DNA of 64,000 bases from Blastocystis sp. Blastoise (GCA_039096225.1 JBBPEB010000025.1:372001-436000), one strand, 5' to 3'; positions 24,157-48,791 are shown, numbered from the stretch's first letter. Numbers and translations are program-made. The notes: generated from the sequence alone by a model not told the origin.

Positions 24157-27100
24157 ATGTTAGATACTGAATCTCAATTAGCTAAAGAGAAATGTATCTG
24201 AATATGATTAAACTGTGTTATTCAATTTTTTAGATTTATTTACTTTTCAAGATGAGACGCAATTGTGGATTTCTAAAGAATTCATTGAGAAATATCGTCA
24301 ATTATCCTTTTATGATATCATTGAACACTCTGAAGAATATGAGGATGGTAGTTATTATATAGATATGCCTTCATTAGGCATGAAGAAAGTGATTCAATTT
24401 CTAATGGAAGGTAATATGGATATTGAATCATTAGATTTGAAAGATAGTTATGATATATATAAAACACTTTTTGAATACTCAGTTACGATCGATAAAGAAA
24501 TTCAAAGTGATTTATTATTTCATATAGAAGAATTATTCTATAAATATTTGAAAAATAATAATTGTCATGTAGATAGATATCGTTATAACTATGTCAAATC
24601 ATATATGCCTATGGATTTATTTGATTTCAATAGGACATCAGTATGTATAAGAGGTAATTCTATGATTATTATTTATAAATAATATTATATATATAGGATT
24701 ATTTACCCCTCAACGAAAAGATGAATTATTATATTATTATCTTCTTATTAGAATGATGAATATTACTAAAGTTGAACTTGAATATAATTATTCTTCGAAT
24801 ATTCCATTAGAATATATATGCCCATCGTGTATTAAAGATATATTCCCATCATTAGAAGAATTAAAGATAACTGTAACAACGCATTATAAGAAGACTGAAT
24901 TATTATTGAATTCAAATAGTGATGAATATATAATGGAATATAATCGGTTATTTAATAAATATGATTATAAAATAGGTCATCCTGAAATATATGAATATTA
25001 CACTGAATCAGAAATGAATGAATATAATAAGATTTCTTCTTTAGACCTGAATAAATTATATTATTCTCAGAATATGATTGATTCCTATAATGAGAAAAGA
25101 GAAAAGAATGAATTACCTAAATTATATAGATATGTCGTTAATGAAGCTATATATACAAATGATTATTCAAAAGTAGAAACTAATGAAATAGAAGATGAAT
25201 ATACATTAAATGATAAAGTCAGTATTAAATATGATGGTATATATTTATATTAAAAAATCATATATTTTATTATTATTATATATAGATAAAACAAATGATA
25301 AAACTTTCTCGTAAATAATTATATTATTTTTATTATACATTTTATTCTGATACATTAAATAGTATTCATGAAGTATCTACTGAACATGGTATATCTCAAT
25401 TATTACTTCTTCCTTCCTATTTGTGTATTTCAAAAATTGTTTTTTATGACTGTAAATAAATACATATATAATAAATATGTTAATTTATTTTAGATTGGGA
25501 TTTTGACTGTAATGTTATGGTTTTTATGAAATTATTTGAAGAAGGTGTTTTTGATTCTATAACTACGTTAAGTATTAAGTGGAGTATTTTCTTTTTGAAC
25601 TATTATTAATATATAATTCTGCATAGTTAAGAAATTAAGTAAACAAATTGATGAGAATTTATTTAACAAAATAATGACAACTCATATATTTCCTAATGTT
25701 ACTGAGATTATATATGATCATGATGATAATGGTATGCATATATATTTATGATTATTATTATTATTTATAGAATTATTCGAATTATCTTTAATAAAGAAAG
25801 AATGTTTCCCTAAATTACATATTATCAATTATGAAATAAAATTAAGTATATTTATATGTTAATAAAAAATTATTATTCTTAATTTAGCTACTGACAATTT
25901 TGATTCTCTATTTCCTGCTAGTTTAATATCTATGATTGATACTATTCGTATAAATGAAATTGATGATGATCAAGAAGAGGAAATATGTCTTCTATTAGAT
26001 GAAATAGCTTATACTCATTCAATTCATATTGATGCTCTTAGTATATATATATATTATATATATACATTTATTTTCATAATAATATATATAATTAGTTTTA
26101 TTTGTTTTTATATAGATGATTTTATTTATTATTTTCCACATTTAAAAGAATTATTAGAGAAAGATCTTGTTTCTATTGATAAACTTGAGATTTATTCTAC
26201 TCGTTCTGAAAACATAAAGAGATTAGATTCTATTGACAATTATAAGCACAGTATTAATAGTTTAGCTATATGGTTTTATGATGATGATGATGATAATGAT
26301 GATAATGATGATAATGATGATGATGATGATGATAATGATGATGATGATGATAATGATGATGATAATAATAATAATGATAATAATAATAATAATGATGATA
26401 ATGATGATGATAATAATAATAATGATGATGATGATAATAATGATGATAATGATGATGATAATAATAATAATGATGATGATGATAATAATAATGATGATAA
26501 TGATAATGATGATGATAATAATAATAATAATAATCGAGATGAAATTGATGCCAGAAATTCATTAGAAACATTCTTTAAGAGTAGTGTATTAGAACATTTA
26601 AATGAATTAACTGTTTCATTTGATGGGAATATAAGTATAGACTATTTAACATGGATATCAACTCTTTTTAATGACAATAAGTTTAATAATATTCAAAAAC
26701 TGACAATTTACTGTATATTCTATTATAAACATATGAATATATATAGTAAGTTTTATAAAAAAAGATTCATCATCTGAATATTTAAATGCATATAAAAATA
26801 TATTAGAGAAAATAATTTCAAAAGCTTCTATTGTTAATATAGTTTGTAATTATTTATATATATGTAATTATTTTGTTAATAAATAATTCATTCAATTAAT
26901 TTTTAATTACTATTATTATTAGTGTGCTATATGACTTTTATAAATCGATTAATTCCTAAAGGTTGTTTCCATAATACAACTCAATTAGATCTACGTATAT
27001 ATATTAAATGATATAATGTTTTACCTATAATATATTACGTTTCATCCTAATCTTTTTATGAATATTAATTTAGATATTAAGGATATACCAGATGATAATT

Positions 27101-27691
27101 TTTGTAAACTATATACTACAGATAATTTCCCTAAATTAAAATCTATCAAGATTTATAATGGTCTTGATGAATCGTGGGTTTATTTTATGAAAACAATTTG
27201 TAATTATATGAGTAATAATGACTTTCCATTATCATGTATTTTCCGATTAGGTATTATGTCATAAATAATATTATTCTACTCATATTCTTTAATATTGTTA
27301 TTCTATAGAATGGAAAAAGAGTTTTAATTTTGATGAATATATTTATAACCCAAATAATTCAATTCTTCGATGTAAATATGATACTAATTCATTTATAAAT
27401 ACATTTATTAGTAAAAAAGATCAAATGATAAGTACATTTGAGATAGAAACATTACTTGATTGTATAAATGAAAATAAAACTCAAAATATAAAAAGCTTAC
27501 AATTATATATTTATGATGAGGAACAATTATCAAAACTTATCAGTTTTATTATTAATGGAAAATTTCCTAAATTGAAAGAATTCTATTTTTGGTTAGGTTA
27601 TCATATTTATGAACAAAGGGATATATGTACACAACAATTAAATGATTCTTCGTTTATTCAAAACAATCACGTGGATTATGAATTTTTCTAA
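24157..27691 (+). CDS. BTB/POZ (KCTD-like) + divergent LRR solenoid protein, paralogue A, 13 introns
   Basis: Fourteen exons splice in frame from MLDTESQLAKEKYLFTFQDETQLW. BTB-like segment DGSYYIDM...VIQFL. LRR-like strands FPSLEELKITV, FDSITTLSIKW, FPNVTEIIY, FPKLHIINY, FNNIQKLTIY, FPKLKSIKIY, NIKSLQLYI, FPKLKEFYF. Internal Asp/Asn tract at 26279-26534. Confidence 0.75.
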
Positions 27692-29270
27692 TTATATTTA
27701 ATTCTTTTGTATATGTGATAATTTATATCTTATATTATTATATATTTTATAAATTTCTTCTTATTATTATTTTCAAGCATTGACGTTTCTATAATGTATT
27801 TATATATAATTTTATTAATACTCTTTCTTGTTTATTTGAGAATGAGAAACTACAAGTGATTAAATAAAATATAAACCTTTATAATATATATAAATAATAT
27901 ATATTATAGAATACCATATAATGTTTATTATGAATTTAACTTTATAGTTTTCATGAAGTTTAAACTTTATAAATATTTCTACATAATGATAATTAGTTGA
28001 ATAACATCTTCATATATAATTAAAATTGTTTTTAATATTTTAAAAATATAATATATAAAAGTGAATGACTTCTTGATAAACAATTTAATATATATTTTAA
28101 GATTATAAATAATACTTGTTTTTTTTTGTTTTATTTACTATTTTTATAAAACATTTTTTATACTTAGTAAAACAGTTCTTCAACAAATGTTCTAAAATAA
28201 TTAAAACACATATTTTAATGAAATACTTTTTTCACTTTCAATATATAATAGTTTATAAAGAAATATCAGTATAGATAATTAAATAAAAATACAAATAAAT
28301 CTAATCATAATTACATTATTATATATTTGGAAGAAATCTATTTTTATCAAAATGCATTGAGAGTAATAAAATATTTTATGATTTAATTCTTATTAGATTA
28401 TAATATTAAATAATTAAACAAAGAATATAATATGAGAATTATGGACTAATCATAGGTAAAATATTATCATATTTAATTATTCATATATTTGCGTATTAAT
28501 ATATAAGCGAAACATATAAATAATATACATTTCTATTACCAATAATATATGTTGTATAAAATATCAAAAATAGTTGTTATTCATCATATATATATGATAA
28601 TATATTATCTATATGAATATGATGATTTTGATATCTTCATAAATTATTGTAAAAAAACTATGAAAATAAAATAATATAAAAAAGAAATGGAAGAGTGAGA
28701 AGAAGGAGATAGAAAGAACAGGAGTGATAATTTTATAAAGAGACTATAGAAGTAATTCAATCTGAGTAATAGAAATATATTATATAAATATAATATAAAA
28801 ATAAATAATAATGTATTAAATATAGTCAGAAATTAGGAATGATTACCAAAAGAATATAGTAATTCATTTCTAGATAAATAATAGTTAGCATATACAAACA
28901 TATAAATATATATAAATAAAAATAGAAACGTATATATTAAAAATAAGAGACTTATCAATCAAAATGTAAATGATGTAAGAAATATAAATTGATTAGACAT
29001 ACAAATCTGTTTGTAGTATCCTCTATATGTTTAATTAGTATTCAATACATTATTTTAAGTAAAATATTTAGCGAAGATCCACACTGAGTTACCTATTTTT
29101 GGAAATTATTGAGATATTTTTGTAGATCATATCTAATGTTAATTATTTTAAATATTATGAATAATTATATATGTATAATAAGCGAATAATAAAAGAAATA
29201 AAAGAATAATAAAAGAATAAAATAAACAAGGGGAAACAAATATATTTATTTCATTAGCATTATTTCATTA

Positions 29271-29920
29271 ATGGTGAAAGGAAAGGCTTTATTTGATATT
29301 GATAAGTTTAATAGATTGAATGAAGATATCAATGTATATGAAGAATTGATGAAAGATGTAGTTAATGTATTTGGATCAGTAATGAATCTTGGTATACATT
29401 CTTTAATATCGATTAATAGACTTATAAAGAATATTGGTGATGATTGTATAGAAAAAGAAGGTGAAAATAATAAATTTGAAAACAAATCTGTTTATGAAAG
29501 TAATAATAATGTAGATAAGAATATAAATATGAATAATGATAATGATAATGATATGGATTTGATTCAATTTACGAATAATGGTCCTGTATTTCAAGTATCG
29601 AAATCAGTTTTAGATTCTTTAAGAGGTTCTTTTATTGAAGAGCAACGTGAAGAAGAATATAGAACAAATGATGGATCTATATATCTTGATTATAGAGGAA
29701 ATGATGCTTTTATTTATTATTTATTAGACTATTTGAATGGAAAGAAAGTATATTTTGATTCTTTTTGTTATGAAGAACAATTAGAATTATTAGATTTATT
29801 TGAATATTGTAATTGATCTCTTCCTATAGAATTACTAAATTGTAGGATAAGAAGAGATACTAAAAAGAAGAAATATGAAGAAAGCGATGAAGTTTCTTTG
29901 ATTATTAATGGAAGAAAATA
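29271..29920 (+). pseudogene. Truncated BTB-TLDc paralogue (nonsense codon plus deletion of the TLDc domain)
   Basis: Closely similar to 50362-51000. In-frame TGA at 29814-29816 where the intact copy has TTA. After ~29919 the sequence switches to similarity with ~52350 onward, implying a ~1.35-kb deletion. Confidence 0.85.
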
Positions 29921-30541
29921 TAATACATATAGAATTATGATGAATAATATTATTGTTTTATCTATACATATCACAAATTAATAAAAGTTAAGAGTATTAT
30001 CTAATTTATTTTGATTTATTATTCATTGAATCATAATATATATTCACATGATGAATTATGAAGAATGATTTATATAATAGAATTCTTATATTACTACCCA
30101 TCAGTATAAATAATTCAAAGTATTCCTTATCCTGTTTTATTTGACATTTATTCTATACTTTTGAAATTGATCATTTCTTAACGTTATGAATAATATTGAC
30201 TTATTATAGGTCGTCTATATATAAAAATAAACAAATACATTTTTATTTTAAAACAACATTTTTAACGATAATTCATTATAAACCTATATATATACTTTTA
30301 TAAAGACACTTGAGTAAAAACTGTAGTTAATTCTCAGTTCTTATAATGTTTTAACTAAAATAAATTTATTTTATAAATGAGTTGACAATAAGTATAAGAA
30401 ATACAATACATGTAGAGAAACAAAAGGCAAACAAAACAAGTAACTATTTGATACATTCAACTATGAAATAAGATAATATACACTTATCATATGATAATGA
30501 TTGATTTATAAAATAGATAGAAGAGACCTTGAGTATCTCAT

Positions 30542-30838
30542 TTAATAAGGACCTTCATTCTTTCTTGCCCAATCCTAAATAGTATAATAAATGAATCAAA
30601 TAATACAAATATAAGGAAATGAGATAATTTATGATCTATACAATGTATATACTTCGTAAATAGGTTCATATTGAAATCCATTAGGATCTAAAAAGAGGAT
30701 ATCGCAGATATGAATAGAAATAATCATAATATTGATGGTAGCAATTTGTATCCAGTAATCAGGGCATGCAAGAGATAATATGGCTACTACAATAATAGCA
30801 GCTAATGTAAGCTTCTGTCTAGCGTTGTCATACACCAT
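30542..30838 (-). CDS. Small two-TM membrane protein, 72 aa, unknown function
   Basis: Exons 30838-30653 and 30574-30542 with a GT-AG intron give MVYDNARQKLTLAAIIVVAILSLACPDYWIQIATINIMIISIHICDILFLDPNGFQYEPIYEDWARKNEGPY. GC is higher than in the flanks. Confidence 0.7.
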
Positions 30839-31681
30839 TTTAAATGAATAACTGCTAACAAATTGCCAAAAATTTAATGATTCTTGTTAATACTTTTTAT
30901 TTGTGAAAAAATAAATTCAGTCCATAAAAGAAAAGGAAAATCAAGAAAAAGTGAATCCAAGCAAACAACCTATTTTTCTAGGTTTTTTCCAGTTATTAGA
31001 AGACTTTGTATTTATAACCATTTTGTTTTGCTTTATTTCGTAATTGCTATAAAACATTAGACTTTTTAAACGAATCAGTTAAATGATACATCAAGAAATT
31101 GTGACTAATACATTTTAAACTGTTAAAAGCACACAGTAGTGAATTATAATCATGATAAAATAGAATTGATTACTAGTCCAATATACCCAAAGATAAGCAC
31201 ATTATGAGTCTCCTAAACATATTAATATTCAATTCTTTATTATAAATATTTCGTATTCTTTAAAAGAAACAAAGAAAAACGAAAAAATAAAACTCGATTT
31301 TCATTAGGGTACCCATATAGAATAGAAAAGAATAGGGTTAACTATTGATGACACATTTATTTATTCAAGAGTTTTCTGATGATGTCTCGGTGTTTAGCGG
31401 AGAATGAGGAACTTTTAAAACGAGTGACGCCATGACTCTATATGGTTTATGTTCTTCTCTATTTCTTTGTTTTGTACAATAAAAGGCTAATAAAAAGAAT
31501 AAAACAAAGATCCACGATATGATTGGTCAATGACTCATTTGGGTATTCCCTTTTTTCTCTTTTCTTTTATAATTTAGGACATTTTTTTATATCTATAGAT
31601 AATCGTGGGTTTTTAGTAAAATCAATTCACTTTCAAGAATTCAACAACATTTTTTAAATAAAATCTTTTTAATAAATAATT

Positions 31682-34600
31682 ATGAACATGAAATTTGTTT
31701 ATTTATTAATCTTGTTAGGTAAGTTCTTTGATCAATGTATGTCTAATAATTTGTATAGTATTGACCCAAGCTGTCGAGAATTGGGGAGATTACATTTCTT
31801 TTGATTCTTACAAGCCTGGTGAAACCTATGTTGAATCCTCTTGGAAACTTGATTTTTCTAATGATTTCTCTTTGATTTCTTGGATACGTGCTATTCCTAA
31901 TCCTGATAAGGAAAGTACTAGTCGTTTTGGTATTCTTTTTGCTTTAACTAATGATAACGAATATGCTTCTGGAAGTGGTGATCGTTTTATTGGTATTAAG
32001 AACGGTAAAGTTTATGCTGAAGCTCGTGGATTACTTGTTGAAGTACAAGGTTCTGAGACTGGTGTTTGTGCTAATGTTGCTGATGGTAGTTGGAGACATT
32101 GGAGAATTATATATACTAAGAATACCAATGATCTTAAGATTTATGTAGATGATACTCTTGTAAATATTTAATATTATTTTTTTATCAATTATTTAATATT
32201 ATTTTTTTATCAATTATTTATATATTATTTTTTTTATCAATTATTTAATATTATTTTTTTTATCAATTATTTAATATTATTTTTTTTATCAATTAATTAT
32301 TTAATATTACTTTTTAATTATTATTATTTTTTTAACAATAAATTTATAATAAATTGATATATTATAGTGTTTAACAACTGCTGAAATGACATCTAATGCT
32401 TTTAATACTCTTCCTGCTCCTACTACTAGTCAGAAAGTATCTTTAGGTTATATGAAATATTCTCGTTCTAGTACAACAGATCCTGTTCCTGATTTACTTC
32501 ATGGTGCATTTGCTAATGTAGTTGCTTTTCCTAATACTATTATTGGTGAAACTGAATTAACTCAATATAAAGGTACACAACCTAATGATACAGGTATGGG
32601 TATTCAACAATTAGTTGTTTCTGAAACTAATGTAAAAGCTTATGTATATGCTCATTATCCTGCTACTGGTGTTACTATTGGTTGTAAGAGTATTCCTGAA
32701 GGTACTACTGTACCTACTGTAGATGAAGTTTTAGCTAGTACTACTCAAATTGATCTTTCTGGATTTACTGGTAATTCTGCTATTACTCTGAATAGAATTA
32801 TTCTTGATGTTCCTTCTGCTGTTGGTACTAATGTTATTTATTGTGCTTCTAAAGTAGGTGATATTAAAACTGCTCAAAATATTATGGAAAATATGAAAAT
32901 TACTTATCATTCTGATTTTGAAACAATTATGCCTATGAGTACTTCTAATGGTAATACTATGTATGATTATGAACATTTCTGGATTTCTTCTCGTGCTGAT
33001 AGTGATTATTCTTATCATTTTGGTATTATTGGTACTGGTGCTAGTGGTCCTATTTTCTGTACACAACCTTATCCTTCTGCTTTTACTAGTGGTTCTAGAT
33101 GTCAATTAGTTGCTGCTAATAAAGCTAGATGGCATTATTTAAATAAAGCTGCTGCTTATAAATATAGTATTAATACTAAAAATATAAATGATGGTACTAT
33201 TCATTATATTGGTTTCAATCATCAGGCTTCTGGTCATGTGACACATCTTTATTTAGATAAAGCTAATATTTTCGAATATGTTATTGATGATACATATGCT
33301 CCTCTTCAACCAAATACTTGGGTATTCTGGAAGAATAGTGAATTTGGTACATTAAATGATATGACTATAAAATTTTTACGTGTTTATCATAAATATTTAC
33401 AAGATGCTGAAATGTTTGCTTTAGCTGATAATTTCCCTATGGATCCTATTGTTACTGTAACTGTTGATTCTGTAACCCCTAATCCTTCTTCTATTGATAT
33501 TAAAATGAAAATTACTGGTGTAGAAGATGTTAATTTATATGCTTATGTAGCTGCTTATTTTAGTAATAGTGCTATTCCTACTATAGATCAAGTGAAAGCT
33601 TCTTCTGCTTCTTATGCTATTCATTCTAATATTATAAATACATTATCTGTTCATGGTTTAGCTTCTGATCAAAGTTATAAAGTATATATGTATTTTGAAC
33701 AAGGTGGTAATGGTGTTATTACTCAAGAAGAAATGGCTAATAATGTTATTAGTGCTACTACTACTCGTTCTATTGGTTGTATAGGATTTAAAGGTACTTC
33801 TACATGTAGTCCTTATGGTACTTTAGATCCTTCTTTAGATTTATCTTGTTCTGCATTAGTACCTTCATCTTCTTCTGGTTATTGTTTATGTGATGGTAAT
33901 GTTAAAGTAAATCCTGTATATTGTAATCATGATACATTTACTTGTAATGATGCTTGTGTTTCTGGAAGTGTTTCTTTTGATATTACTGGTTGGTATACAA
34001 AAGCATTTAGACATTTTAGTACTGCTATTAGTTCTTTACCTACACCTATATCTGCTTATAGATCTATGAATCCTACATTTAATTTATATTATTCATCCTT
34101 AAATATTGTAGGTAATAGTAATAATGCTGGTAATTATGGTAGTATTCCTTATTCTACTTATGAAGGTATGATTCAATATCATAGTGGTATATTTACTGCT
34201 ACTACTTCTGGTACTTATCAAATTGGTGTTACTCAAGATGATGTTCTTATGGTATTAATAGATAGTTTTGATATGAATAATAATATTGTTTATTATACTT
34301 TATGGGGTCCAAGTGAAGTAAAAACTTCTGTTGATTTAGTTGCTGGTGAACATAAAATTATAGTATTATTTGGTAATGGTGGTGGTGGTTTTTCATGTAT
34401 TATTAATATATATGATCCTCAAGGTAATAATGTAAAAGATAATGTTAAAATTGGTTTAGGTAATAAACATGGTATTAATGCTTATTATACTAATCTTGAT
34501 GATGATAATACTTGTGATTGGCCTAGTTCTTCTATAATGAATGCTGGTACAAATAGTGGTGGTAGTAATTATGTTAGTGCTAATCAATATCCTGATGAAT

Positions 34601-37600
34601 TTAATTTTGATTTTGTTGCTTCTGATACTACTTCTTTCTCTTCTTCTGTTACTTTACCTGCTAATTTCTATTCTGTTTTTACTACACATTTACAAATACC
34701 TGTTACTGGTTCTTATACATTTACTCTTACTACTAATGGTGTAGCTATAGTTATTTTTAATGGTGTTACTCAATTAACAGTTACTGAATGTGGTGAAAAG
34801 ATTAATACTTTTACTGCTTCTCTTACTACTGGCTTACTTCCTATTACTATACGTTATAGAAGTAATAGTGCTACTAGTAAATTACAATTAGAATGGGAAT
34901 CTACTGATGCTAGTATTACAAAACAAATTATACCTAATAGTTATTTATATATTGAAGATATTGATATTCCTACTTATGAATTATCTTCTCCTTATAATGG
35001 ATTAAATAAAGTAACTGATCCTTATGCTATTATTACTCTTTCTTCTTCTAAACCTATTAATAATCTTCCTGAAAGTGCTATTACAGTTGAAGGTGCTACT
35101 ATTAGTGAAATTACTAAAGTTCATTCACTTAAATATACATTTAAAGTTACTCCTTCTAGTTCTGTATCTAGTGTCAAAGTATATATTGCTGCTAATGGTT
35201 TACGTTGTATAAATGCACTTAGTAATACAAATCCTAGTAATACAATTAATATTCAATTTGGTTATTTAGATTTTACTGCTACTATAAGACTGAAGGCTGG
35301 ATTTGCTCTTTCTTTATCTGATAATAAACCTTCTCAAGAATCTAATGTTTTTACTATTGGTTTAGATTCTACTGAACCTAATGCTTATGTATCTTTACCT
35401 ACTGGTACTGTAAATACACCTATTGTTAATGGTGAATTATATTTCTCTGAAGAAATGGCTTATGTTGATCAAGGTATTTTAGCTATTACTGGTGGTAATG
35501 TAGTTTCTAATTCATTTATTCCTATTCCTGATACACCTACTAATACTGCTTTTTCATTTAAAATACAAATAGAATCTTCTTCATTTGTTTATGTACGTGT
35601 ATCTATGGGTACTACTATGTATTATGATATTGCTGGAAATGCTATTACTTCTTTTAATGGTGGTTCATTTGTTTATAAGAGTGATTATGCTGTTCCTTTA
35701 CCTACTATTTCTACTTCTTATTATATGCCTGTTTCTAGTACAACTGTTCCTATTACTATTACATTTGATGCTGATATTACTGGATTAACTATTGATTCGT
35801 TTACTTCTACTGCTGGTACTATTTCTAGTGTTACTGGTAGTGGTATGATTTGGAATGCTATATATACTTTTTCTAATCCTTCTAGTAATACTATTACTGG
35901 TTCTGTTAAAGTAAATGCTAATAGTGTTAAAGGTGCTGGTGATATAGATAATGCTGAATCTAATTTATTAACTATTACTTATAGTCCTCAAGTTATGACT
36001 ATTACTAGTATTACTCCTATTAATGGTAAAGTTGATGTACCTGCTAATACTCAAACTATTCGTATAACATTTGATAGTACTCCTTCAAGAGGTTCTGGTT
36101 CTGCTGTATTTTCTAGTGGTACTGAAAGTAGTATTGTTTATGATGCTAATAGTAGTTTAATTGAATTTGATGGTTCTAGTGTTATTTTTAGAATTTCTCA
36201 ATCTTTAATTGGTGATAGAACATATACTTTAGTTATTCCTTCTTATTTCTTTATTGATACTACTACTAATAAATATTTTAATGGTTTTACTGGTTCTCAA
36301 TATAATTTCCATGTTGCTTGTAGTATGTGTGGATTACCTACTTTTACTACTGATTTACCTTCTACATTAAATAGTAATATTGGTTTTACTATATCACTTC
36401 AAGTTGTTGTTACTGCTGTTCCAGTTGCTACTTATCAATGGTATTTAGATAATTTACCTATTGAAGGTGCTATTTCTACTACTTATTCTAAAGTATTAAC
36501 TTCTACTGATTTTGGTGTATATACTGTTAAAGCTACTAATACTTATGGTACTTCAACTTCTAATAGTTTAATTATTATGAAAGATGATGTTAAACCTATT
36601 ATTACTATTACTCCTGTTGCTGAAGGTGCTACTTGTGCTACTTCTTATGCTATTAATCTTAGTTTTAATAAAGAAGTTAGTTCTATATCTTGTGATGCTT
36701 TTGAAACTAGTTCTACTATTACTTGTGTTAGTACTCAATTATTAACTTCTACTACTGCTATTGCTGCATTTACTATTACTCCTACTGGTTATAATACTCT
36801 TACTATTAAATTACTTTCTGATAAGATATGTGATACATTTAATAATTGTAATGAAGAAACTACTTATGATATTACTGTTGATTGTGTACCTCCTTCTATT
36901 CAATCTTATTCTCCTGCTCATAATAGTATTGATATACAATTAGATGCTGTTATTCAATTAACATTTAGTGAAACTATTCAATTTGGTAATACTTTTAATG
37001 TACAATTTATGTGTATTGGTACAAATACTTGTAATGCTATTACTGTTGATAGAACTGGTATTAGTCTTTCTGAAGATAAGAAAACTGTTGTTATTAATAA
37101 GAATTCTTTATTCTCTCCTGAAAAAGAATATACTTTAAGTATAGCTAGTGGATTAGTTATGGATATGGCTTCTAATATATATACAGGATTAACTGCTGGT
37201 GAATATAAATTTACTACAAGTGCTGCTTCTGCTCCTTCTCTTAGTACTCGTGTTCCTGCTTCTAATAGTATTAATGTTCCTCTTAATGGTAATATAGAAT
37301 TAACTTTTGATATGCCTGTTCAATATGGTACTGGTAATATTATATTAAGAGCTCAAGATCAAGAAGATATTAGTATTAGTTCTCTTTATGTTGTTATTCA
37401 ATCCAATATTGTTACTATTGTGTATTCTAATTTAATATCTTCTACTTTATATAATGTTATTATCCCTAGTGGTGTATTTACTGAAACTACTAGTAATATA
37501 GCTTATAATGGTATTGCTGCTGGTGAATATACTTTTACTACTGTTGTTCAACCAATTGTTTCTTCTTATTCTCCTATTAATGGTGCTATTGATATTGCTA

Positions 37601-40600
37601 TAAATGAACCTATTCAAATTACTTATAATATAGCTATTCAAAAGAATTCTGGTTCTATTGTTTTTACTCCTTCTTCTGGTAATGCTATTACTATTGATGT
37701 TATGAATCCTGTTGTTACTATTTCTGAAGATGAAAAAACTTTAATTATTACTCCTTCTCTTCTTACTGGTTTAACTTATACTGTTACACTTCCTGAAGGT
37801 ATAGTTGTTTCTAAAGAAAGTAATATTCCTTGTAATGCTGTTACTGATTATACTATATCAACTCCTTCTGCTCTTACTTATACTGTATCTCCTGTTGAAT
37901 CTTCTGAAAACTTAAAATTAAATTTTGTTATTACTTTAACATTTAATAGAGATATTGCTAGTTTAAGTACTACTAATAGTGTTACTATTGCTGGTACAAA
38001 TACTATTACTACTGTTGGTACTATAAGTACTAGTAATCCTAAAGAAGTACAATTTAGTTTTACAGAAAATTTAACTGCTAATTCTCAATATTATGTTTCT
38101 ATTCCTGCTGATTTAGTTACTGATATTAAAGGTGTTAAGAATACTGTAGGTATATTTACTTATCATACTGCTTCTGCTCCTATTGTAAGTAGTTCAGATC
38201 CAAGTAATAATGCTTCTAATGTTTCTATTAATAAAGTATTTGTATTTACATTCTCTTCTACTATTGTTGCTGGTACAGGATCTATTTCATTTACTGCTTC
38301 TGGTAAACCAACTATTACTTATTCTATTACTGATGGTAATTGTCAAATTAATGGTAATACTTTAACTATTTCTTTATCTACTGGTACTACATTAGAAAAT
38401 GGTTCTACTTATACATTAGATATACCATCAGGATTAGTACAAAATAATTATGATATAGGTAATACTCAATATATGTTAGTATTTTCTACTCCTTCATTCC
38501 CTACTATTTCTAATATATCTCCTCCTACTGGTACTCCTAATCTTGTTCCTTCAGGTGTTGTTATTATATTAACATTTAGTCAAGCTATGCAAAAAGGTAC
38601 TGGTTCTATTCAATTTGTTGGTCCTACTACTATTAATATTGATGTTACTAGTACTCAAGTTGTTGTTGATAATACTGTTGTTACTATTACTCCTACTTCT
38701 ATATTAACTCCTGGTACTTATAATTTAGTTATTCCTGCTAATAGTTTAAGTTCTACTAGTGGTGCTCCTTATCAAGGATTAAATTCTGGTGAATATTCTT
38801 TTACTACTTTATATGCTGCTGATATTAGTAAATTCTATTTAACTGGTACTTCTGTAAGTAATGGTCTTATTACATCTAATTTAGTTGCTGGTGCTACTGC
38901 TATATGGGAAATACATTTAAAGAATAGTAATGATGAAGATATTACTTCTTTAACTAATATGGTTTTAGGTGGTAGTTCTTTAAGTGATTTATCTATTACT
39001 GCTACTATGGTTGGTCCTAGTACTATTCCTGTTACTATTGGTCAATTAACTCAAAATGGTATTATTACTATTTCATGTACACCTGAATCTGCTGGTAGTT
39101 ATACATTAACTATTCAAGCATCTTGTGGTACTGTTACTAATACACATATTAATCATAGTCCTTTTACTTCTATTTCTGTTATTGCTTCTACTACAGCTGC
39201 TTCTAAGATTACTTATACTGGATCAATAAATGTTCAACAAAAGACTTCTTCTTTCTTTGAATTCCATACTTATGATCTATATAATAATCCTACTGATCCT
39301 ACTGATTATTCAAGTGCATTTGCTGTTGATTGGAATTTACCATTATCATTTAATTCTATAACTGATGGTGTATTTAGTAAATCTAGTACTGGTATATTTA
39401 GATATACTTATACTACTCCTATTATTGATGGTAATATTGATTATCAAACTATTTCTGTTTCATTTAAATTTAATAGTGAAACTATACCTAATCTTTCTCA
39501 AGTAACATTTACAAATCCTTATAATGCTGTTTGTCCACATAATTGTAATATGAGAACAAATCTTGGTGAATGTACTGCTAATGGTTGTACATGTATTTCT
39601 GCTGGTTATTATCCTGAAGCTGGTTGTACTACTTGTCCTAGTACTACTTTTGATCCTTTAGTTGAATGTAGTAATCATGGTAGTTGTTCTGCTAGTCTTA
39701 TTACTAAGACTGCTAGTTGTACTTGTGATATTAATTATAAAAATCAAAATTGTGGTACTTTAGATATTATTACTGGTGAAAATCCTAATGAAGCTGCTGA
39801 TGATTCTATGAGTGTTATTTTAACTAAATTTACTATTAGTGGTATTTCTGCTCCTGTTAGTGAAGAAAATATTCAAAGTATTAAATTAGCTATTGCTCAT
39901 GTCATGTCTATGAAATGTTGTTATGATATTCGTGTTACTAGTTCAACTACTACTTCTTATTTAAAGGCTTCTATTTATCAAAATCAAGTAGAATTTGATG
40001 TTCGTGTTAATGTTCCTAAAGATACAGCTGCTGAAAGTGCTACTTTATTAACTAATAGTTTTAGTGATGGTTCATTTGTTGCTGCTTTAGTTCAACAAGG
40101 TATTACTGCTTCTAGTGTTACTGTTAATTCTGAACCTGTTAATAATGGTCCTTTATGTACAGATAATGTACAAAATGGATTAGAAACAGATATAGATTGT
40201 GGTGGTAGTACTTGTTCTCCTTGTCCTAATGAGAAGAATTGTCTTGTTGATACTGATTGTCAAAGTGGTAAATGTGATCTTGAAACTATGAAATGTATTT
40301 TCGTTTTCCCTGTTTGGGCTATTATTCTTATTGTTGTTGTAGTTATCATTATTATTGCTGGTATTGTCTTCTTCTTTATTAACAAACAAAAGAAGATTAA
40401 TGCTAAGAAACCTAAGTTATCTAAAGTTAATAAGAATGCTACTGCTAAAGCTAAGAAAGAAGCTGCTGCTGCTGCTGCACCTGCTACTGTAGCTGTTACT
40501 GCTGTTCCTGCTACTAATGCTCCTCCACCAGCTCCTGCTGCTGTAAATACTCCTCCTCCTGCTACTACTACTTCTACTACTACTACTACTGCTCCTAAGG

Positions 40601-40617
40601 ATGAAGTCCAAATCTAA
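31682..40617 (+). CDS. Giant type I surface protein (~2895 aa): LamG-like, PA14 x2, multiple Big_5/SbsA-type Ig repeats, Ig, filamin-like, EGF-like, Cys-rich repeat, TM, Pro/Ala/Thr tail
   Basis: Exons 31682-31718, 31759-32159 and 32368-40617. Signal peptide MNMKFVYLLILLVLTQA. LamG-like VADGSWRHW. PA14-like SGTYQIGVTQDD and TGSYTFTLTTNG...LQLEW. Repeats SYSPAHNSIDI...IQLTFSE. Ig-like YQWYLDN...DFGVYTVKATN. EGF-like CSNHGSC. Cys motif CTDNVQNGLETDIDCGG. TM VWAIILIVVVVIIIIAGIVFFFI followed by a basic stop-transfer. Confidence 0.9.
32171..32300. repeat. Intronic minisatellite, ~26-nt unit ATATTATTTTTTTTATCAATTATTTA x5
   Basis: Five tandem copies within intron 32160-32367. A comparable ~15-nt tandem repeat lies in intron 54473-54706 of the other surface-protein gene. 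Confidence 0.8.
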
Positions 40618-41019
40618 ATGAATTTTTAATAATTTATTTTTTAATTATATTTTTATTATATTTTATATATATATATTCTATTATATTTTATATATGGAGT
40701 ATATTAAGATTTGTTTTAAATATATATTTTTTTGTTTTGTTATTGTGAGTAGTTATAATATATATATATTTTAAAAGAAAAATAATCAATTCGTAAGAAT
40801 TATTTGTGATGTTATTTAATAAATAAATTTAAAAGTAGTTGTTATGGCAATAAAAATTCTATTTATTTTCTTTTATTATCTTGAAATAATGTTTAAATAT
40901 AAAACCTCATTTTTTTTAATTCAATTCTTTATAATAAGAATATAGATTATCAATTACAAAATTGACTTGATAAGGGAAAGAAAAGGAGATTATTAGTTAG
41001 GTGTGATTTAATATTTTTT

Positions 41020-41530: not shown

Positions 41531-44500
41531 CACGTTTATATATTATGAATTATTATAACAATTTTATAACTATTATATTATATAAATAAGATTATTTTAT
41601 TAATATGTTTTAGTATTTAAATTATTTTATATATTTATTTACTATATTAATAATTAATAGATGATTGATTTCTATTGGATTTTGTTTATAAATAGTTTTT
41701 ATAAAACTTAAATATATATATAATTATTTTTTATGATATTCTACAAATTAAACAATATATGTCAGTATCGTAAATTTAGCAGATGATACTATTCATTTTT
41801 TATACACTAATCGTTAATATATTTAATAGAAATATTTAAAAATATATTCATATAATAAAACTAGTAGAATATATATGTGATTAATTATTTAAATATATAC
41901 ATACATAATAGCATTATTAAAAAACAAATTGAGAAAAGTAAAAAGGCAATAAACTTATAGAATTATATATTTATTATTCAAAAATCACTAGTTATATATA
42001 AAAAAGATATATAAATAAGAGTTTGGATAATATAAATGTCTAATCATATTTTAAATAGCTATTTATAATCTATGCAAGAATTTTATTTTTTAATATAGTT
42101 TTTAAATATAGTTTTCAACTATATTAAATAATAGAGTATAAAACTATATAGAAAGTAAATAGTGTCTAAATTATTCTTTTAAAAAGATTTTATTACTACG
42201 AACTATTATTAATCTTTTCACATATATATATTCTATTTAAAAAATGAACTATTTTACATTAAATGAAAAGAATTGCTTCATTAAAAAACACTTTTTTTAA
42301 ATAAATAATAGACAAATATATTAGAAAAAAACATAAAACTTATTATTTCTCACATAATTTACATGATATTTTTTATTTGAATATGACACTGTTTCCAATT
42401 ATTTCAATGAAACTCTATTAACTAATCAACTAAAGAAAACCATATCTTTTACTACACTTTTACTCAATTATGTTATTCTTATCAAATGAATACTATTATT
42501 GTTGATTTAAAAATAAATGTATGGTTTTCTTTCAATATATATACTCCAATGATATTATTTCTTTTAAGATATCTCTTTATTCTTTATATCTTTAGTGTTT
42601 CTATTGTTATTTAGTTTTAATTATTTATAATATAATCCATAAATTACTCTTATATACTAGAATTTTATTTAACCTTTTATATATTACATTTTTTATCGTA
42701 TGTATCTTCTGTACACAATAGTTTTTGTATATAAAGTGAATAATAAACAATTATTATATAAAATATTTTATTATATATATATGTATACTTGCTAATAACT
42801 GTTCATCTTCTTAGTTCTATTTCTTATTCTCTTTCATAATTTACTTTCTTTTGAAATAGAGGTTTATATATTATTATTTTTATTCATTTTTTATTATTTT
42901 TTATGACTATATTTATATTACTTTATATCATATATAATTTTTCAAATCATTATCTAGTATTGTTATTATTATTTATATACATTAGAAACACTATATCATC
43001 ATTAATACTATTATCATAATTCTTTTTTTATTTCCAAATACTATAGATATATCTTTTTTATTTCTTGATATATCTTCTGGTATTACTTAATAATTTTTTA
43101 TGCTTTCTATTCATAGATTTCTTGATATTGATACTAATCTTTATATATATATATTAAAATATATATATATATCTTTCCATTTCTATATAATTATCTATTC
43201 TATTTATTATTCGAGATTTAACTTTAATTTTTTGTTTTGTTAGTTTAAATTTATATCTTATTATGATAGTTATATTTTATGAATAATTTAAGTGAAAGTA
43301 ATAAGTATTAATAAATATACTAAATTTCAATTTTATAAGATTTACAGATATTTCACACCAATTAAAGTAATGATTATTTTAAAAAAATAAAATGGTACTA
43401 TTATATATGTTTTTGTTAACATAGTTAATAATGTGTTATAATATGTATTCTAATAAGATATTCAAAGACTTTATTCACTTTTATGACTATATTTTAGTAT
43501 CACTTTCAGTTAAACTTATCTTTTATGAATAAGAAATGATATAATCATATTACTAAGACAACTATATTATTATTTTATTGTTGATAATTGCTATGAAGCT
43601 ATTCTTACTAGTGATATGACAAGAAAATGATAAATAGTTTTGTTAAAGAAAGTGTTGCTAGTTTTCTTTTTATTATATTATTATTATTTATATATATTTT
43701 TTTATAGATTTATTAATATTAATTAAGAGAGTAAATATTCTATTTTCTTTTATTGTTAAAGTTAAAAATATATATTATACATAGTAATAGTATTAATAGG
43801 TTATTTATATATATTAAAAAGTATCCAAATACATATTTTATTTATCATAGAGTTCATAGAAAATTATTATAATAAATATAATATAAATATATGTTTAAAA
43901 ATATTGTTAAAATATGTTTTTATGATTATAATTGATGGAAAGAATTAAATGAGTAGATTTTTAGAAATAAGCTAAATATAAAAAACTTTGAATATCTGTA
44001 TAATGATAAGAAAGAAATGTATTTCATAATATATGCATTAATAGCATAAATAATATCTATGTTTTTTAACGTATTTCATTTAATCTAAGGATTCAAGGAA
44101 GATAAGACTAATTAATAAGCTTGATTTTGATAAAGAAAAGAGTAGAGAATTTTGAATATAATAATAAGATTTGTTGAAGAAAGCAGAAATATTTAATGTG
44201 ATTCCACTTCAGAATATACGAGTGATGTTCCTTTGATAATCATTTCATATATAAGACTATGTTTCACATCTTAATAGATATCTAAATGATATTTTAAGAC
44301 AAATATTATTCATTTTTATTAATCTGTTTTAAAAAAATATAATGTTTGAAAGAATGATTAATGATTTGATAGTAGTAACATTTTTCTAGTTAATTCCAAT
44401 AATTTATACAAAGAATATATTCCATTTCAACATTTTGATTGACATAATTACAATTATTTTTCATTTTATTGAGAATAAATGTATTCTATACTATAATAGA

Positions 44501-44838
44501 AACATAAAGAGAATCTCATTTTCAATGAATACAAATAATATGCTTTAAAAAAGTGAATAATGTGTTGTTTCTGAAATTTAATATGAATCTCAAATAAGTT
44601 TATCTGAAAAAGACTGAATAAAAACCGCGAAAGTTGATGTTCAATAGAGTAATTTTTACAAAATTCTCATTAGTTTTTTTCAAAGGTTTTCCAAGTTTTA
44701 TTCTTTCTTATTTCAATGTTTCATGATAATTAGACTATATTCAGCAACTTTAGGATATTTATTTATTGATTAAATCAAGGTATATCTTTTAAGAATAATA
44801 ACATATTATCCTTCTGTAATTATAGTTGAATTCAAGTA

Positions 44839-47307
44839 ATGTCAACAACAGAATTTCAATTAACTGAAGAGAAATGTATTTGAATATTATTAATAATACC
44901 TTAATCTATTTTTAGATTTATTTACATTCCAAGATGAGACGCAATTGTGGATTCCAAAAGAATTTATTGAGAAGTATCCTCAATTTCCCTTTTATAATAT
45001 TATTGAGCACTCTGAGAAATATGATGATGGAAGTTATTATATAGATATGCTTCCTTTTCATATTGAACAAGTGATTTCTTTTTTAATGGAAGAAAACATG
45101 GATATTGATTCATTAGATTTGAAAGAAAGTTATGATATATATAAAACACTTTTTGAATACTCAGTTACGATCGATAAAGAAATTCAAAGTGATTTATTAT
45201 TTCATATAGAAGAATTATTCTATAAATATTTGAAAAATAATAATTGTCATGTAGATAGATATCGTTATAACTATGTCAAATCATATATGCCTATGGATTT
45301 ATTCAATTTAGAAGAGAAAAAAATATATTATGGTATATATATATTTATAATATTTATAATATATACATATATAGACTTATTTACATCAAAAAGAAAAAAT
45401 GAATTATTATATTATTCTCTTCTTATTAAAATGATGAATATTACTAAAGTTATAATTATATGTAAATATATATAATAATATAATATAAATAATAATATAT
45501 ATATAGATGATTATTCTTCGAATATTCCATTAGAATATATATGTCCATCGTGTATTAAAGATATATTCCCTTCATTAGAAAAATTAACAATTACTGGTAT
45601 ATATATAATTTTATAATAATAAATATACATATAGTAATTACACATTATAAGAAAACTGATGTATTGTTGAATCCAAATAGTGATGAATATATAATGGAAT
45701 ATATTCGCTTATTTAAAAAATATAACTATAAAATAGGTCATCCTGAAATATATGAATATTACACTAAATCAGAGATGAATGAATATAATAAGATTTCTTC
45801 TTTAGACCTGAATAAATTATATTATTCCCATGATTTGATCGATTCCTATAATGAAAGAAGAGAAAAGAATGAATTACCTAAATTATATAGATATGTCGTT
45901 AATGAAGCTATATATACAGATGATTATTCAAGTGTAGAAACTAATGAAGAAGGAGATGAATATACACTTGATGATGAAGTCATTATTATTTATGATGGTA
46001 TATATATACTATAGAATCATATATTTTATTATTATTATGTAGAAAAAACAAATGATAAAACATTCACGTAAATAATTATATATTATTTTATATTAATATA
46101 TAAATAGTATTGATAAAGTATATACTAAGCATTGTATATCTCAATTATTACTTCTTCCATCATATTTGTGTATTTCAAAAATCATTTTTGATGAATGTAT
46201 ATATATACATATATATATATATATATAATAATTTATTTTAGATTTATATAATCAAATTGATCCTATGTTTTTTATGAAATTATTTGAAGAAGGTGTTTTT
46301 GATTCATTAACTACATTCAGTATTAAGTGGAGTATTTTCTTTTTAAATTATTAATATTATCAATATTATAATTCTGCATAGTTAAAAGATTAGCAAATAA
46401 AATTGATGAGAATTTATTTAACAAAATAATGACAACACATGTATTTCCTAATGTTAGTGAACTAATTTATGGTGATTTTGATGATTATTATGATGATAAT
46501 GGTATATATATATATTTATTATTGTTATTATTATTTATAGAACATTTCCAATTATCTTTAATAAAGAAAGAATGCTTTCCCAAACTACATATTGTCAATT
46601 ACGACATTATAATAAGTATATTAATATATTAATAAATAAATTATTATTCTTAATTTAGCTACTGACAATTTTGATTCTCTATTTCCTGCTAGTTTAATAT
46701 CTATGATTGATACTATTCGTATAAATGAAATTGTTTTTGATCAAGAAGAAGAAATATGTCTTCTATTAGATGAAATAGCTTATACTCATTCAATTCATAT
46801 TGATATAAATGGTATAATTATGTGTATTATATAAATTTTTACATTTAAGAATATAATACTATATATATAATTTATTATATTTGTTTATTTATATATAGAT
46901 GATTTTATTTTTTTTCTCCCGCATCTAAAAGAGTTATTAGCCAAAAATCTTATTTTAAATGATTATTTTTATAGTATGAAATATTCTTTATTCTTTTGAT
47001 TGCTATTTTTTTTATATATATATTTTATATACTATTCTATAAAGTTGATTCTTCTCGTTCTGAAAATATTAATTTGTTTGAGTCTATTGAAAATAATAAT
47101 CAAAATATTGATAGTTTAGATATAATGTTTAATGGTATGTATAAAATATATTAATAAATACATGGTTGATATATAATATTAATAATACTTATTCATTTAT
47201 AGATGATGATGATGATTATTATTATGATGATTATTATTATGATAATAGTGATGATAATGATGATGATGATGATGATGATGATAAAGATAAAGATAAAGAT
47301 GATAATG

Positions 47308-47345
<38 letters not shown>

Positions 47346-48791
47346 CAACATAAAATTGATGTGAGAAATGCATTAGAAAGATTCTTAAATACTAATATAT
47401 TAAAACATTTGAATTATTTATATGTTTCATGTATATTCTTTCTTTAAATATATTATTATTCTATGTTTAATATCTATAGTTGATGATGATATAAGTATAG
47501 AATATTTAACATGGATATCAACTCTTTTTAATGATAATACGTTTAATACTATTCATAAATTAAGAATTAATTGTATATTATATTATAAAATAATGAATAT
47601 ATATATAGTATATTCTATCAAAGAAGATTCATCATCTGAATGTTTAACAGCATGTGAAAATATATTAGAGAAATTAACTTCTAAGGCTTCTATTGTTACA
47701 ATAAGAGGTAATTATTTATATAATTATTCTTTGTAAAGATAGTTTATTCACATATATTTAACTATTCGTTATAGATTGTACTGTGACTCTTTTAAATCGA
47801 TTAATTCCTAAAGGTTGTTTCCATAAAACAACTCAATTATTTCTAGGTAAATATATTAAATATACATATTATTTCAATTATAATATATTTTATATTTCAT
47901 TCAAATATTTTTTTATGAATATTAATTTAGAAGTTTATGATATGCCAAATGATAATTTTTGTAAACTATATACTACAAATAATTTCCCTCAATTAAAATC
48001 TATCAATATTTGTATATATTTTAATAATAATTTTTTTTCTCTATTATGAATCATATATATTTATGTAAAAATATTTCTTTATATAATAATTATTTTTATT
48101 AAATAATACATATATATATATATATAAACCTTACAATAGAAAATGGTGGTTAGATATTATTAAAACATTTTGTAGATTTATTAATAATAATGACTTTCCA
48201 TCTTCAAGTATTGTCCGATTAAGTGGTATATCATTAATAAAATGATCCTATTCATATTTATTAATATCGTTATTCTATAGAATATTATTATGATTCTGAT
48301 TATGATGAGTATTGTGTATATGACCCAAATTATTCTATTCTTCGATGTAAATATGATAGTAATTCATTTATAAATACAATTATTGGTACATATGGTATAT
48401 ATTTATATAATAACATATTATATATATAGATGAAACAATGAGTAAATATGAAATAGAAACATTATTTGATTGTATAAATGAAAATAAAACTCAAAATATA
48501 AGAAGCTTAAATTTATGTATATTAATATTTATTTTTTATAAGAAATTTCTTTTTTTATAGATATTTATGATGAGGAACAATTGTCAAAACTTATCAATTT
48601 TATTAATACTGGAAAATTTCCTAAATTGAAAACATTGAATTTTAGGTTAGGTATGTATATAGTTATTGAAATAATAATATTATATAGATGATGATATTTG
48701 TATACAAAGTGATATATATAAACAACAATTAAATGATTCTTCATTTATTCAGGAAAATCATATTAATTATGAATGTGATACATTTTATTAA
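44839..48791 (+). CDS. BTB/POZ + divergent LRR solenoid protein, paralogue B, 22 introns
   Basis: Starts MSTTEFQLTEEKYLFTFQDETQLW and is colinear with paralogue A throughout. It has all 13 of A's introns plus 9 more. The intron starting at 48012 has no in-frame AG acceptor, so the gene may be defective or the consensus may be in error. Confidence 0.7.

Follow-up and report, generated by a model that had tools for sequence, protein, structure and literature searches.

In nematodes and plants, the BTB-MATH and F-box families are ubiquitin-ligase adaptors that have expanded under adaptive evolution and, as reportedly described by Thomas in 2006, combine a ligase-docking domain with a fast-evolving substrate-binding domain. 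The plant BTB/POZ domain-containing protein FBL11 (BTB-BACK-LRR; about 900 amino acids) also has a BTB domain followed by leucine-rich repeats (LRRs) and, to our knowledge, is not part of a large family. The PEX1 family of the bacterium Protochlamydia has 73 members with an N-terminal BTB domain and C-terminal LRRs, for which a connection to ubiquitination in the host was proposed (Domman et al. 2014, PMC4209131). At the gene level, the LRR exons of vertebrate NLRs and ribonuclease inhibitor are frame-neutral, with their borders at a constant point of the β strand, and in-frame skipping has been shown for exon 5 of NLRP3 (Hoss et al. 2019, PMC6642158).

We analyzed a window of 64,000 nucleotides (the whole stretch of DNA under study) from a tortoise-gut Blastocystis (Blastocystis sp. 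'Blastoise'). Two genes in this window, copies A and B, are members of a very large BTB-LRR family within one genome. A search with the BTB exon across the 33-Mb genome produced 246 candidates, 150 scored matches, and 122 matches at E <= 3.6e-34, giving at least 122 strong family copies, and the last exon of copy A had 177 matches. With approximately 4 kb per copy, the family fills roughly 1.5 to 2% of the genome. The high copy number and the presence of copies on most contigs could be explained by transposition if the family were carried by a mobile element. We regard this as very improbable, since the copies are 58 to 98% identical at the protein level, are often found in local arrays, and have kept host-like introns. 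A physical link to Helitrons was ruled out, as none of the 51 Rep loci adjoined a family member.

The family is unnamed and deposited as hypothetical throughout. All 95 deposited family proteins are called 'hypothetical protein [Blastocystis sp. Blastoise]', none of them has a Pfam domain of its own (the precomputed Pfam column is empty), and the published genome paper mentions neither BTB nor LRR. No paper using 'BTB-LRR', 'LRR-BTB', or similar phrasing was found in the literature searched. A profile search that covered 1.84 billion proteins yielded nothing beyond proteins of the same genome and generic BTB_2 proteins, with no sequence similarity to PEX1, and a search with a single exon as the query found no relative in metagenome contigs. 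Thus far, the family appears in this lineage only. Search and folding queries were single exons or deposited proteins; the joined models of copies A and B were used in local scripts only.

Both genes were rebuilt by hand, and copy B was rechecked with a purpose-written spliced aligner guided by protein A, which recovered all 22 introns, with two donors shifted in frame by 3 and 9 nt (Table 1). The phase counts in the first-pass annotation agreed with the rebuilt models: 12 of 13 introns in copy A and 21 of 22 in copy B are phase 1. The sole phase 2 intron comes after a 25-nt micro-exon in both copies. However, the exon that follows the micro-exon had been misread as 26 nt (donor at 25389 in copy A). 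Its true length is 89 nt in both copies, because deposited paralogue proteins read through GISQLLLLPSY..., and this correction changed the protein lengths to 953 (A) and 913 (B) amino acids while the intron counts and phases were unaffected. A conserved insert of 121 amino acids lies near the start of the LRR region of copy A, and the exon unit that carries the Asp/Asn insert in this copy is the only strongly length-variable unit of the family (30 to 113 amino acids).

Table 1. Positions of the features of copies A and B, counted from the first nucleotide of the window
Feature	Position	Strand	Description	Basis
Copy A	24157..27691	+	14 exons, 13 introns, 953 aa; intron-poor member	manual model
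Copy A BTB exon 2	24234..24653	+	T1/KCTD-type BTB/POZ fold (predicted), invariant F-x-F-Q-D-E motif	AlphaFold, PDB matches
Example conversion tract	24622..24720	+		sliding identity, informative-site runs
Copy A LRR solenoid region	24697..27691	+	about two dozen strand-helix repeats (predicted)	paralogue P0007 model, Foldseek, alignment
Copy A exon 5	25363..25451	+	89 nt; enters phase 2, leaves phase 1	remodelled
Asp/Asn low-complexity insert in copy A LRR exon	26280..26537	+		translation
Copy B	44839..48791	+	23 exons, 22 introns, 913 aa (full model); typical family plan	
Copy B BTB exon 2	44916..45332	+		alignment, structure
Copy B exon 3	45375..45461	+	87 nt, phase 1-1; intact yet omitted from deposited WA158_004548	
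Copy B exon 7	46108..46196	+	corrected length 89 nt	remodelled
Copy B exon 10	46541..46615	+	75 nt, phase 1-1; intact yet omitted from deposited model	
Copy B exon 12	46899..46973	+	75 nt, phase 1-1; intact yet omitted from deposited model	
Nine copy B introns absent from copy A	45462-45506, 45597-45634, 46974-47044, 47135-47202, 47431-47479, 48012-48153, 48386-48429, 48517-48560, 48651-48687	+		DNA alignment

Family statistics were obtained from 22 genes (copies A and B and 20 further paralogues). Together these contain 455 introns at 22 conserved sites, with 430 introns in phase 1, 25 in phase 2, and none in phase 0; each of the 20 further paralogues has 18 to 22 introns in the same pattern as copy B. 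The deposited models that mapped exactly gave 222, 12, and 1 introns in phases 1, 2, and 0, respectively. A rough ab initio call of the other introns in the window yielded phases of 47/45/23 (approximately 57/24/19% in the high-scoring subset), and therefore the phase 1 rule belongs to the family and not to the genome. When the 22 introns of copy B were mapped onto a paralogue structure predicted by AlphaFold, 17 fell between 1 residue before and 3 residues after the C-terminal end of a β strand, compared with an expectation of 16% (binomial, ~3e-10). These results uphold the earlier proposals that introns mostly lie directly behind LRR-like strands and that the exons are phase-symmetric modules of about one repeat. 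Introns that enter every repeat at the same point, almost all of them in phase 1, are the trace left when a gene grows through duplication of its exons. All 23 exon units were kept at near-constant lengths in 22 of 22 genes, and this fixed plan rules out a variable repeat number for the genes sampled.

Frame-symmetric LRR exons with a constant border point are shared with vertebrate NLRs and ribonuclease inhibitor. However, an exon of the Blastocystis family holds one repeat (72 to 105 nt), whereas an NLR exon holds two (171 nt). The two also differ in the partner domain, which is BTB here, in the absence of NACHT from the Pfam scans of family members, whose N terminus has the BTB fold in the models, and in the host, a stramenopile gut protist. 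The likeness to NLRs therefore goes no further than the LRR fold and how the exons are laid out. PEX1 resembles the family in the order of BTB and LRRs and in being a large, fast-diverging, lineage-specific expansion of 'hypothetical' proteins. In contrast to PEX1, which is bacterial and intron-less, varies in its number of LRRs (1 to 39 across those families), and comprises candidate secreted effectors, the Blastocystis family is eukaryotic, with 22 spliceosomal intron sites and a fixed repeat number.

Exact intron loss is recurrent in the family. The nine introns missing from copy A were lost by this copy, because each of the sites is occupied in 19 to 21 of the 22 genes. The ends of the copy B intron at 48012..48153 (+) align with coding sequence of copy A, and the deposited model has the identical intron. 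Splicing to the closer acceptor, at 48139, would introduce a stop, so copy B uses the one at 48153 and is short of about 9 residues in the repeat at this intron.

The first-pass annotation had proposed a BTB domain joined to an LRR solenoid, and AlphaFold models and structural matches bear this out: the predicted architecture is an N-terminal T1/KCTD-type BTB domain followed by an LRR solenoid of approximately 700 residues. The model of the BTB exon (pLDDT 77) matched KCTD10, KCTD7-Cul3, CP190, and KCTD17 in the PDB with VIA Z scores of 7.4, 7.2, 7.0, and 6.7, respectively, over ~90 to 115 residues. Nearly all rows at the top of the VIA list were BTB, T1, or Skp1 folds, with Z scores of about 7 being middling, and Foldseek also placed BTB-type folds first, but weakly (E about 0.07). 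By sequence, a PDB search with the BTB-exon profile gave chance matches only, and neither copy A or B nor any of ten full-length members had a Pfam match, LRR families included, the scans being of single exons of copy A and of deposited proteins. Among ten distant paralogues in the same genome (24 to 36% identity to copy A), five matched Pfam BTB_2 (PF02214), two of them with scores above the 21.4-bit cutoff (26.6 and 22.7 bits). In the model of a full-length paralogue, P0007 (pLDDT 86.5, pTM 0.85), strands alternate with helices all the way from residue 145 to the C terminus. It gave 89 Foldseek matches in the PDB at E <= 0.001, led by NLRC4, NLRP5, InlA, COI1, TIR1, and CARMIL, with E values of about 1e-6 for NLRC4, NLRP5, InlA, COI1, and TIR1. 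In a language-model search, the nearest clusters were those of FBL11, with scores of 0.83 to 0.84, which are below 0.9 and serve as leads only; unlike FBL11, the Blastocystis family showed no BACK domain, and there was no sequence-level match between them.

We found no signal peptide or membrane span in the family proteins, so any target must be intracellular. The reading we favor, and consider somewhat more likely than not, is that the family provides diversifying substrate or ligand receptors. In these cytosolic proteins, the BTB end would oligomerize and would probably dock to a cullin-RING ligase, as is common among KCTD and other BTB proteins, while the LRR face would bind varied targets; at least one cullin gene is present in the genome. 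Alternatively, a T1-type BTB domain might only assemble tetramers or pentamers, making the proteins LRR scaffolds or regulators that are multivalent but unconnected to any ubiquitin ligase. The top structural matches are to domains of the T1/KCTD type, known for assembling into tetramers and pentamers, the distant paralogues fall in BTB_2, Cul3 binding is not universal among KCTD proteins, and only a single cullin locus was detected (C15:291035-291924). However, the matches include KCTD7 in complex with Cullin-3 as well as Skp1-type adaptors, and the layout of an adaptor fold with an LRR solenoid mirrors that of Skp1 with the F-box-LRR receptors TIR1 and COI1, both of whose folds were matched. 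We therefore consider a scaffold without a ligase link unlikely. In TIR1 and COI1, the adaptor is a separate protein bound via the F-box, whereas the Blastocystis proteins have no F-box and the BTB domain is fused to the solenoid.

Over the predicted structure, copies A and B mismatched most often in strands (36%), less often in loops (29%), and least in helices (20%). The clustering of differences at strand ends noted in the first-pass annotation is real, although moderate, while its description of the helices as near identical goes too far. A crude Nei-Gojobori count over 11 disjoint pairs, made despite gene conversion and a genomic AT content of 80%, gave dN/dS values of 0.34 for the BTB domain, 0.64 for helices, and 0.78 for even offsets from the strand end. 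For the odd offsets (-3, -1, +1, and +3), a class picked after viewing the per-offset profile and only presumed to face the concave side, the value was 1.35 (bootstrap confidence interval, 1.05 to 1.75). The per-offset profile alternates around the strand end. The BTB domain is under purifying selection, and at alternate positions around the strand end amino acid change appears to outpace silent change.

A neutral birth-and-death family with weakly constrained repeats ('genomic drift'), in which strand-end variability reflects solvent exposure only, would fit the whole-gene dN/dS of about 0.62, the value of about 1.07 for the strand-end class taken together, and the stops carried by 4 of the 22 genes sampled and by several matches to the BTB exon. 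A similar reading is reported for plant F-box families (PMC3030570). We think that drift is a rather unlikely account here, as the alternate strand-end positions have a confidence interval above 1 against 0.78 at their neighbors, the BTB domain is held at a low dN/dS, and pure decay would not have kept the exon plan and exon lengths almost perfectly. The earlier suggestion of diversifying recognition is consistent with the faster change at strand ends and with dN/dS above 1 at alternate positions predicted to be exposed, the class being post hoc and the count crude. Like the BTB-MATH and F-box families, the Blastocystis family combines a conserved adaptor domain with a fast-evolving binding domain, occurs in tandem arrays, and undergoes copy birth and death; it differs from them in that its binding domain is an LRR solenoid joined to a BTB domain of the T1 type, with putative docking, and in the prominence of gene conversion and exon modularity.

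Under the receptor reading, the family would diversify by point changes and by conversion among its copies, with the skipping of in-frame exons as a further, tentative source. The paralogues are gene-conversion mosaics as judged by sliding identity and informative-site runs (runs test, p < 2e-4), and this patchwork conversion links paralogues on different chromosomes. In the tract listed in Table 1, which covers an exon end, an intron, and the start of the next exon, copy A is 99% identical to a chromosome 19 paralogue (L051) that is B-like on either side. The expectation that history would be incongruent along the gene is therefore supported. However, conversion tracts end inside exons with no regard to their borders, and the plan of 23 exons does not vary, so exon shuffling at the DNA level, which had also been proposed, is unsupported in the 22 genes sampled.

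Exon skipping, raised in the same proposal, survives only as a hint from intact cassette exons omitted in deposited RNA-guided models, unlike the skipping in NLRs. The deposited protein WA158_004548 (P0141) corresponds to copy B, with which it shares its translation exactly and in which it places an intron at 45333-45506, and the exon 10 unit of copy B is also omitted in the deposited model of a 97% identical paralogue (L052). In all, 9 of 12 exactly mapped deposited models, in addition to those of copy B and the P0004 gene, omit intact in-frame exons. These omissions might instead be gene-prediction artefacts, with one full-length isoform per gene and the symmetric phase a relic of exon duplication; short AT-rich exons of 72 to 99 nt are difficult for predictors, and small shifts of donors or acceptors also set the deposited models apart from homology models. 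We give this explanation a substantial chance, somewhat short of even, since the omissions recur, every omitted exon is a multiple of 3 in length, and the splice sites used are in each case donors and acceptors that belong to the family.

The family may have an E3-adaptor or immune role. A more specific and speculative version, which we hold to be improbable as it stands, is an intracellular germline-encoded variable receptor repertoire, in which more than 100 BTB-LRRs would recognize foreign or selfish proteins (viral, bacterial, or transposon derived) through a rapidly evolving LRR face and pass them to a cullin ligase, with new specificities arising via conversion and in-frame skipping. If true, the repertoire would be an independently arisen protist counterpart of NLR-type or F-box-type immunity. 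The family also provides a natural case for the growth of repeat proteins via exon duplication and for exact, one-at-a-time intron loss, with more than 100 paralogues in which 22 sites are open to scoring. Overall, it represents a candidate recognition system in one of the commonest gut eukaryote lineages, with hallmarks of immune receptor families, namely, modular exons, conversion from copy to copy, and apparent selection on the putative binding face.

The structures of copies A and B, the two genes of the BTB-LRR family in the window, were modeled by hand together with a DNA alignment of both copies. The window is strongly AT-rich, with approximately 20% GC, and its introns are short and of the GT-AG type. 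The strong phase bias reported by the first-pass annotation (21 of 22 introns in B and 12 of 13 in A in phase 1) was reproduced in the rebuilt models; the sole exception in both copies is a phase 2 intron that follows a 25-nt micro-exon. The next exon, previously read as 26 nt, is really 89 nt long, because deposited paralogue proteins read through the stretch that had been called intron, and this correction left intron counts and phases unaffected. A custom spliced protein-to-DNA aligner guided by protein A only recovered all 22 introns of B, with two donors shifted in frame by 3 and 9 nt relative to the hand model.

Features of the two gene copies, their surroundings, and related loci (window positions unless a contig is named)
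Feature	Position	Description
Window	C18:372001-436000	
Copy A	24157-27691	14 exons; 13 introns, 12 in phase 1; 953 aa
Copy B	44839-48791	23 exons; 22 introns, 21 in phase 1; 913 aa
BTB exon (exon 2)	A 24234-24653; B 44916-45332	
Conserved 121-aa exon	A 24880-25236	P0007 residues ~205-345
Corrected 89-nt exon	A 25363-25451; B 46108-46196	
Exons absent from deposited B model	45375-45461; 46541-46615; 46899-46973	Intact, phase 1-1
Inexact intron loss	48012-48153	Long B intron overlapping sequence coding in A
A-like tract of L051	24622-24720	28 consecutive informative sites
Open frame between A and B	29271-29816	T1-type-BTB-like end
Open frame between A and B	32386-40617	8.2 kb, single exon, 2743 aa
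L052	G000:C18:523719-528719	Minus strand
L017	G000:C23:573496-576912	Two BTB exons on opposite strands

The source, Blastocystis sp. Blastoise, is one of the tortoise isolates reported by Lind et al. (Genome Res 2025, PMC12129017), and its NCBI locus tags carry the prefix WA158_. The genome paper, which makes no mention of BTB or leucine-rich repeats, selected gene models by strict RNA-seq support of their introns, requiring three or more reads at each junction. One deposited protein, WA158_004548 (P0141), aligns to copy B with an identical translation; 13 of its introns are exactly those of our model, and three more use B-model donor and acceptor sites. Since the annotation was RNA-seq guided, P0141 provides independent support for the B splice sites. 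The deposited model of B leaves out three exons and that of L052, a paralogue on the same contig, two, while the P0004 gene model omits an intact 87-nt exon 3, and 9 of 12 other exactly mapped models lack one or two exons of 72 to 99 nt. Given the strict RNA-seq support for the introns chosen, these omissions make real exon skipping plausible, or they may be prediction error on short AT-rich exons.

Searches and folding took single exons or deposited proteins as inputs. No Pfam match was found in A, B, or ten full-length family members, and a profile search against PDB sequences returned none. Within the genome, distantly related paralogues of the first large exon reached Pfam BTB_2 (T1/KCTD type), twice above the cutoff. 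The AlphaFold model of the BTB exon (pLDDT 77) matched KCTD10, KCTD7 bound to Cullin-3, CP190, KCTD17, Skp1, and potassium-channel T1 domains, with Z scores up to 7.4, and BTB/T1/Skp1-type structures ranked before nearly all other matches. For P0007, a full-length deposited paralogue with 65% identity to B, folding together with 62 relatives gave a model (pLDDT 86.5, pTM 0.85) in which strands and helices alternated from residue 145 to the C terminus. Foldseek gave 89 matches at E values of ≤0.001, led by NLRC4, NLRP5, internalin A, COI1, TIR1, and CARMIL. Thus, the proposed BTB-plus-LRR architecture was right according to the predicted models and their structural matches, and the BTB domain can be further classed as T1/KCTD type. 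Neither a signal peptide nor a membrane span was seen in family sequences, an absence that suggests cytosolic proteins. The best-conserved part of the protein is the segment encoded by the exon after the first repeats, which measures 121 to 122 aa in all 22 genes modeled (A, B, and 20 further paralogues). It is predicted to form a long hairpin and helices that interrupt the solenoid, and it could serve as a functional site.

Across these 22 genes, 430 of the 455 introns were in phase 1, 25 in phase 2, and none in phase 0, with 22 of the 25 phase 2 introns at a single conserved site. There were 22 conserved intron sites, each occupied in 19 to 22 genes. The 12 deposited models that mapped exactly had 222 introns in phase 1, 12 in phase 2, and 1 in phase 0. 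Other introns of the window, called roughly ab initio and about one-third of them false positives as judged from shuffles, numbered 47, 45, and 23 in phases 0, 1, and 2, and the high-scoring subset was split approximately 57/24/19% by our count. The phase 1 rule is therefore a family trait rather than a genome-wide one. When mapped by alignment onto the predicted P0007 model, 17 of the 22 B introns fell within −1 to +3 residues of the C-terminal end of a β strand (chance, 16%), as claimed from sequence for the LRR-like strands. Thus, the exons are single repeat units cut at one point and in one phase, and the simplest reading is that the gene would have grown by exon duplication. As 19 to 21 of the 22 genes carry the nine introns found in B but not in A, their absence from A is due to loss. 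In other copies, one to four introns have been lost per gene, scattered over the sites, and the gene for P0007 is intron poor as well; most losses were exact, with one inexact case in A.

The A and B proteins are 73% identical, with mismatches at 36% in strands, 29% in loops, and 20% in helices, and column entropy among 24 proteins was highest at positions −3 to +4 relative to the strand end. The median Nei-Gojobori dN/dS over 231 pairs, obtained by a crude method in a compositionally extreme genome, was 0.35 in the BTB domain, compared with 0.60 in helices and 1.07 in the strand-end class. At offsets −3 to +3 the values were 1.15, 0.91, 1.07, 0.78, 1.37, 0.74, and 1.36, an alternation that a strand exposed on one side should produce. 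In 11 disjoint pairs, odd offsets had a dN/dS of 1.35 (bootstrap confidence interval, 1.05 to 1.75; the odd/even split was picked after the profile had been seen), compared with 0.78 at even offsets, 0.64 in helices, and 0.34 in the BTB domain. This pattern, with its post hoc classes and crude estimates, fits diversifying selection on the putative exposed face.

The four closest genes, A, B, L051 (contig 19), and L052 (contig 18, 528 kb), were clear mosaics. The first 750 bp of L051 are identical to B, after which it is A-like, then B-like, then A-like again, and onward; runs tests gave P values of <2e-4 for every trio tested. One of the variable segments singled out by the first-pass annotation (FNRTSVCIRG versus LEEKKIYYD) lies inside a swapped patch. 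The history is therefore incongruent along the gene, as had been predicted, but the exon shuffling proposed alongside it was not supported in the genes sampled. Tract ends occurred as often within exons as in introns, and the same 23 units of near-constant length made up all 22 genes, the sole strongly length-variable exon being Asp/Asn-rich (30 to 113 aa). These two observations speak against reassortment of exon modules, and ordinary homologous conversion is, on this sequence pattern, the cause of the incongruence.

The BTB exon gave 150 scored matches from 246 candidates in the 33-Mb genome, 122 of them with E values of ≤3.6e-34 and most of these open, on most contigs and often in local arrays; the last exon of A had 177 matches. 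Ninety-five deposited proteins (representatives at 90% identity) matched P0007, all named "hypothetical protein" and all from Blastoise. A BTB-exon profile returned 85 of 1.84 billion representative proteins; among those looked up, the full-length ones all came from the Blastoise genome, and those from other sources were either unnamed, short sequences or BTB_2 proteins of a generic kind. No relative was found in metagenome contigs.

L052 is an inverted twin of B, 97% identical and about 108 kb away, with flanks identical over at least 300 bp upstream; one patch near the intron at 48012 matches the contig-19 paralogue instead. Only two of the 95 deposited proteins lie on contig 18, belonging to B and L052, and the intron-poor copy A may lack a deposited model. 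At L017, two family BTB exons are arranged head to head with about 600 bp between them, which suggests divergent pairs with a common promoter region. The deposited P0011 (WA158_006655, 1174 aa) joins a family member to a downstream multispan membrane protein (PF10225) and is probably two genes merged in annotation. Between A and B, the shorter open frame ends in a T1-type-BTB-like stretch (DGSIYLDYRGNDAF...), had no Pfam match, and was absent from the family BTB-exon matches; the longer one encodes a protein with numerous Ig-like repeats, with Cys-rich modules, and with a membrane span at the C terminus. Genome-wide, 51 Helitron Rep-domain loci were found, mostly in open frames of ~1500 to 1650 aa, and their near-identical scores (~191 to 201 bits) indicate that this Helitron family would have been active recently.

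In vertebrate NLRs and ribonuclease inhibitor, exon borders lie at a fixed point of the β strand and exons are frame neutral, which in NLRP3 permits LRR exon skipping (Hoss et al. 2019, PMC6642158). The constant border is common to both systems, whereas exons hold two repeats there and one in the Blastocystis family. The same domain order is found in PEX1 of Protochlamydia, a 73-member BTB-LRR family viewed as host-directed effectors (PMC4209131), and in plant FBL11, the latter a language-model lead only (0.83 to 0.84). The layout, in which a fast-evolving LRR solenoid follows a conserved fold of the adaptor type, matches the logic of cullin-RING substrate receptors, and Blastoise has at least one cullin gene. 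Such a receptor role is a candidate function: the BTB domains may bind a cullin, may simply oligomerize, or may act in some other way, and a role in immunity or conflict would likewise be a hypothesis. Overall, the family is real, very large, and previously undescribed. Exon-modular LRRs, an expanded ligase-adaptor-like family, and gene conversion are known principles, and what is new is the organism and the arrangement in which they combine.
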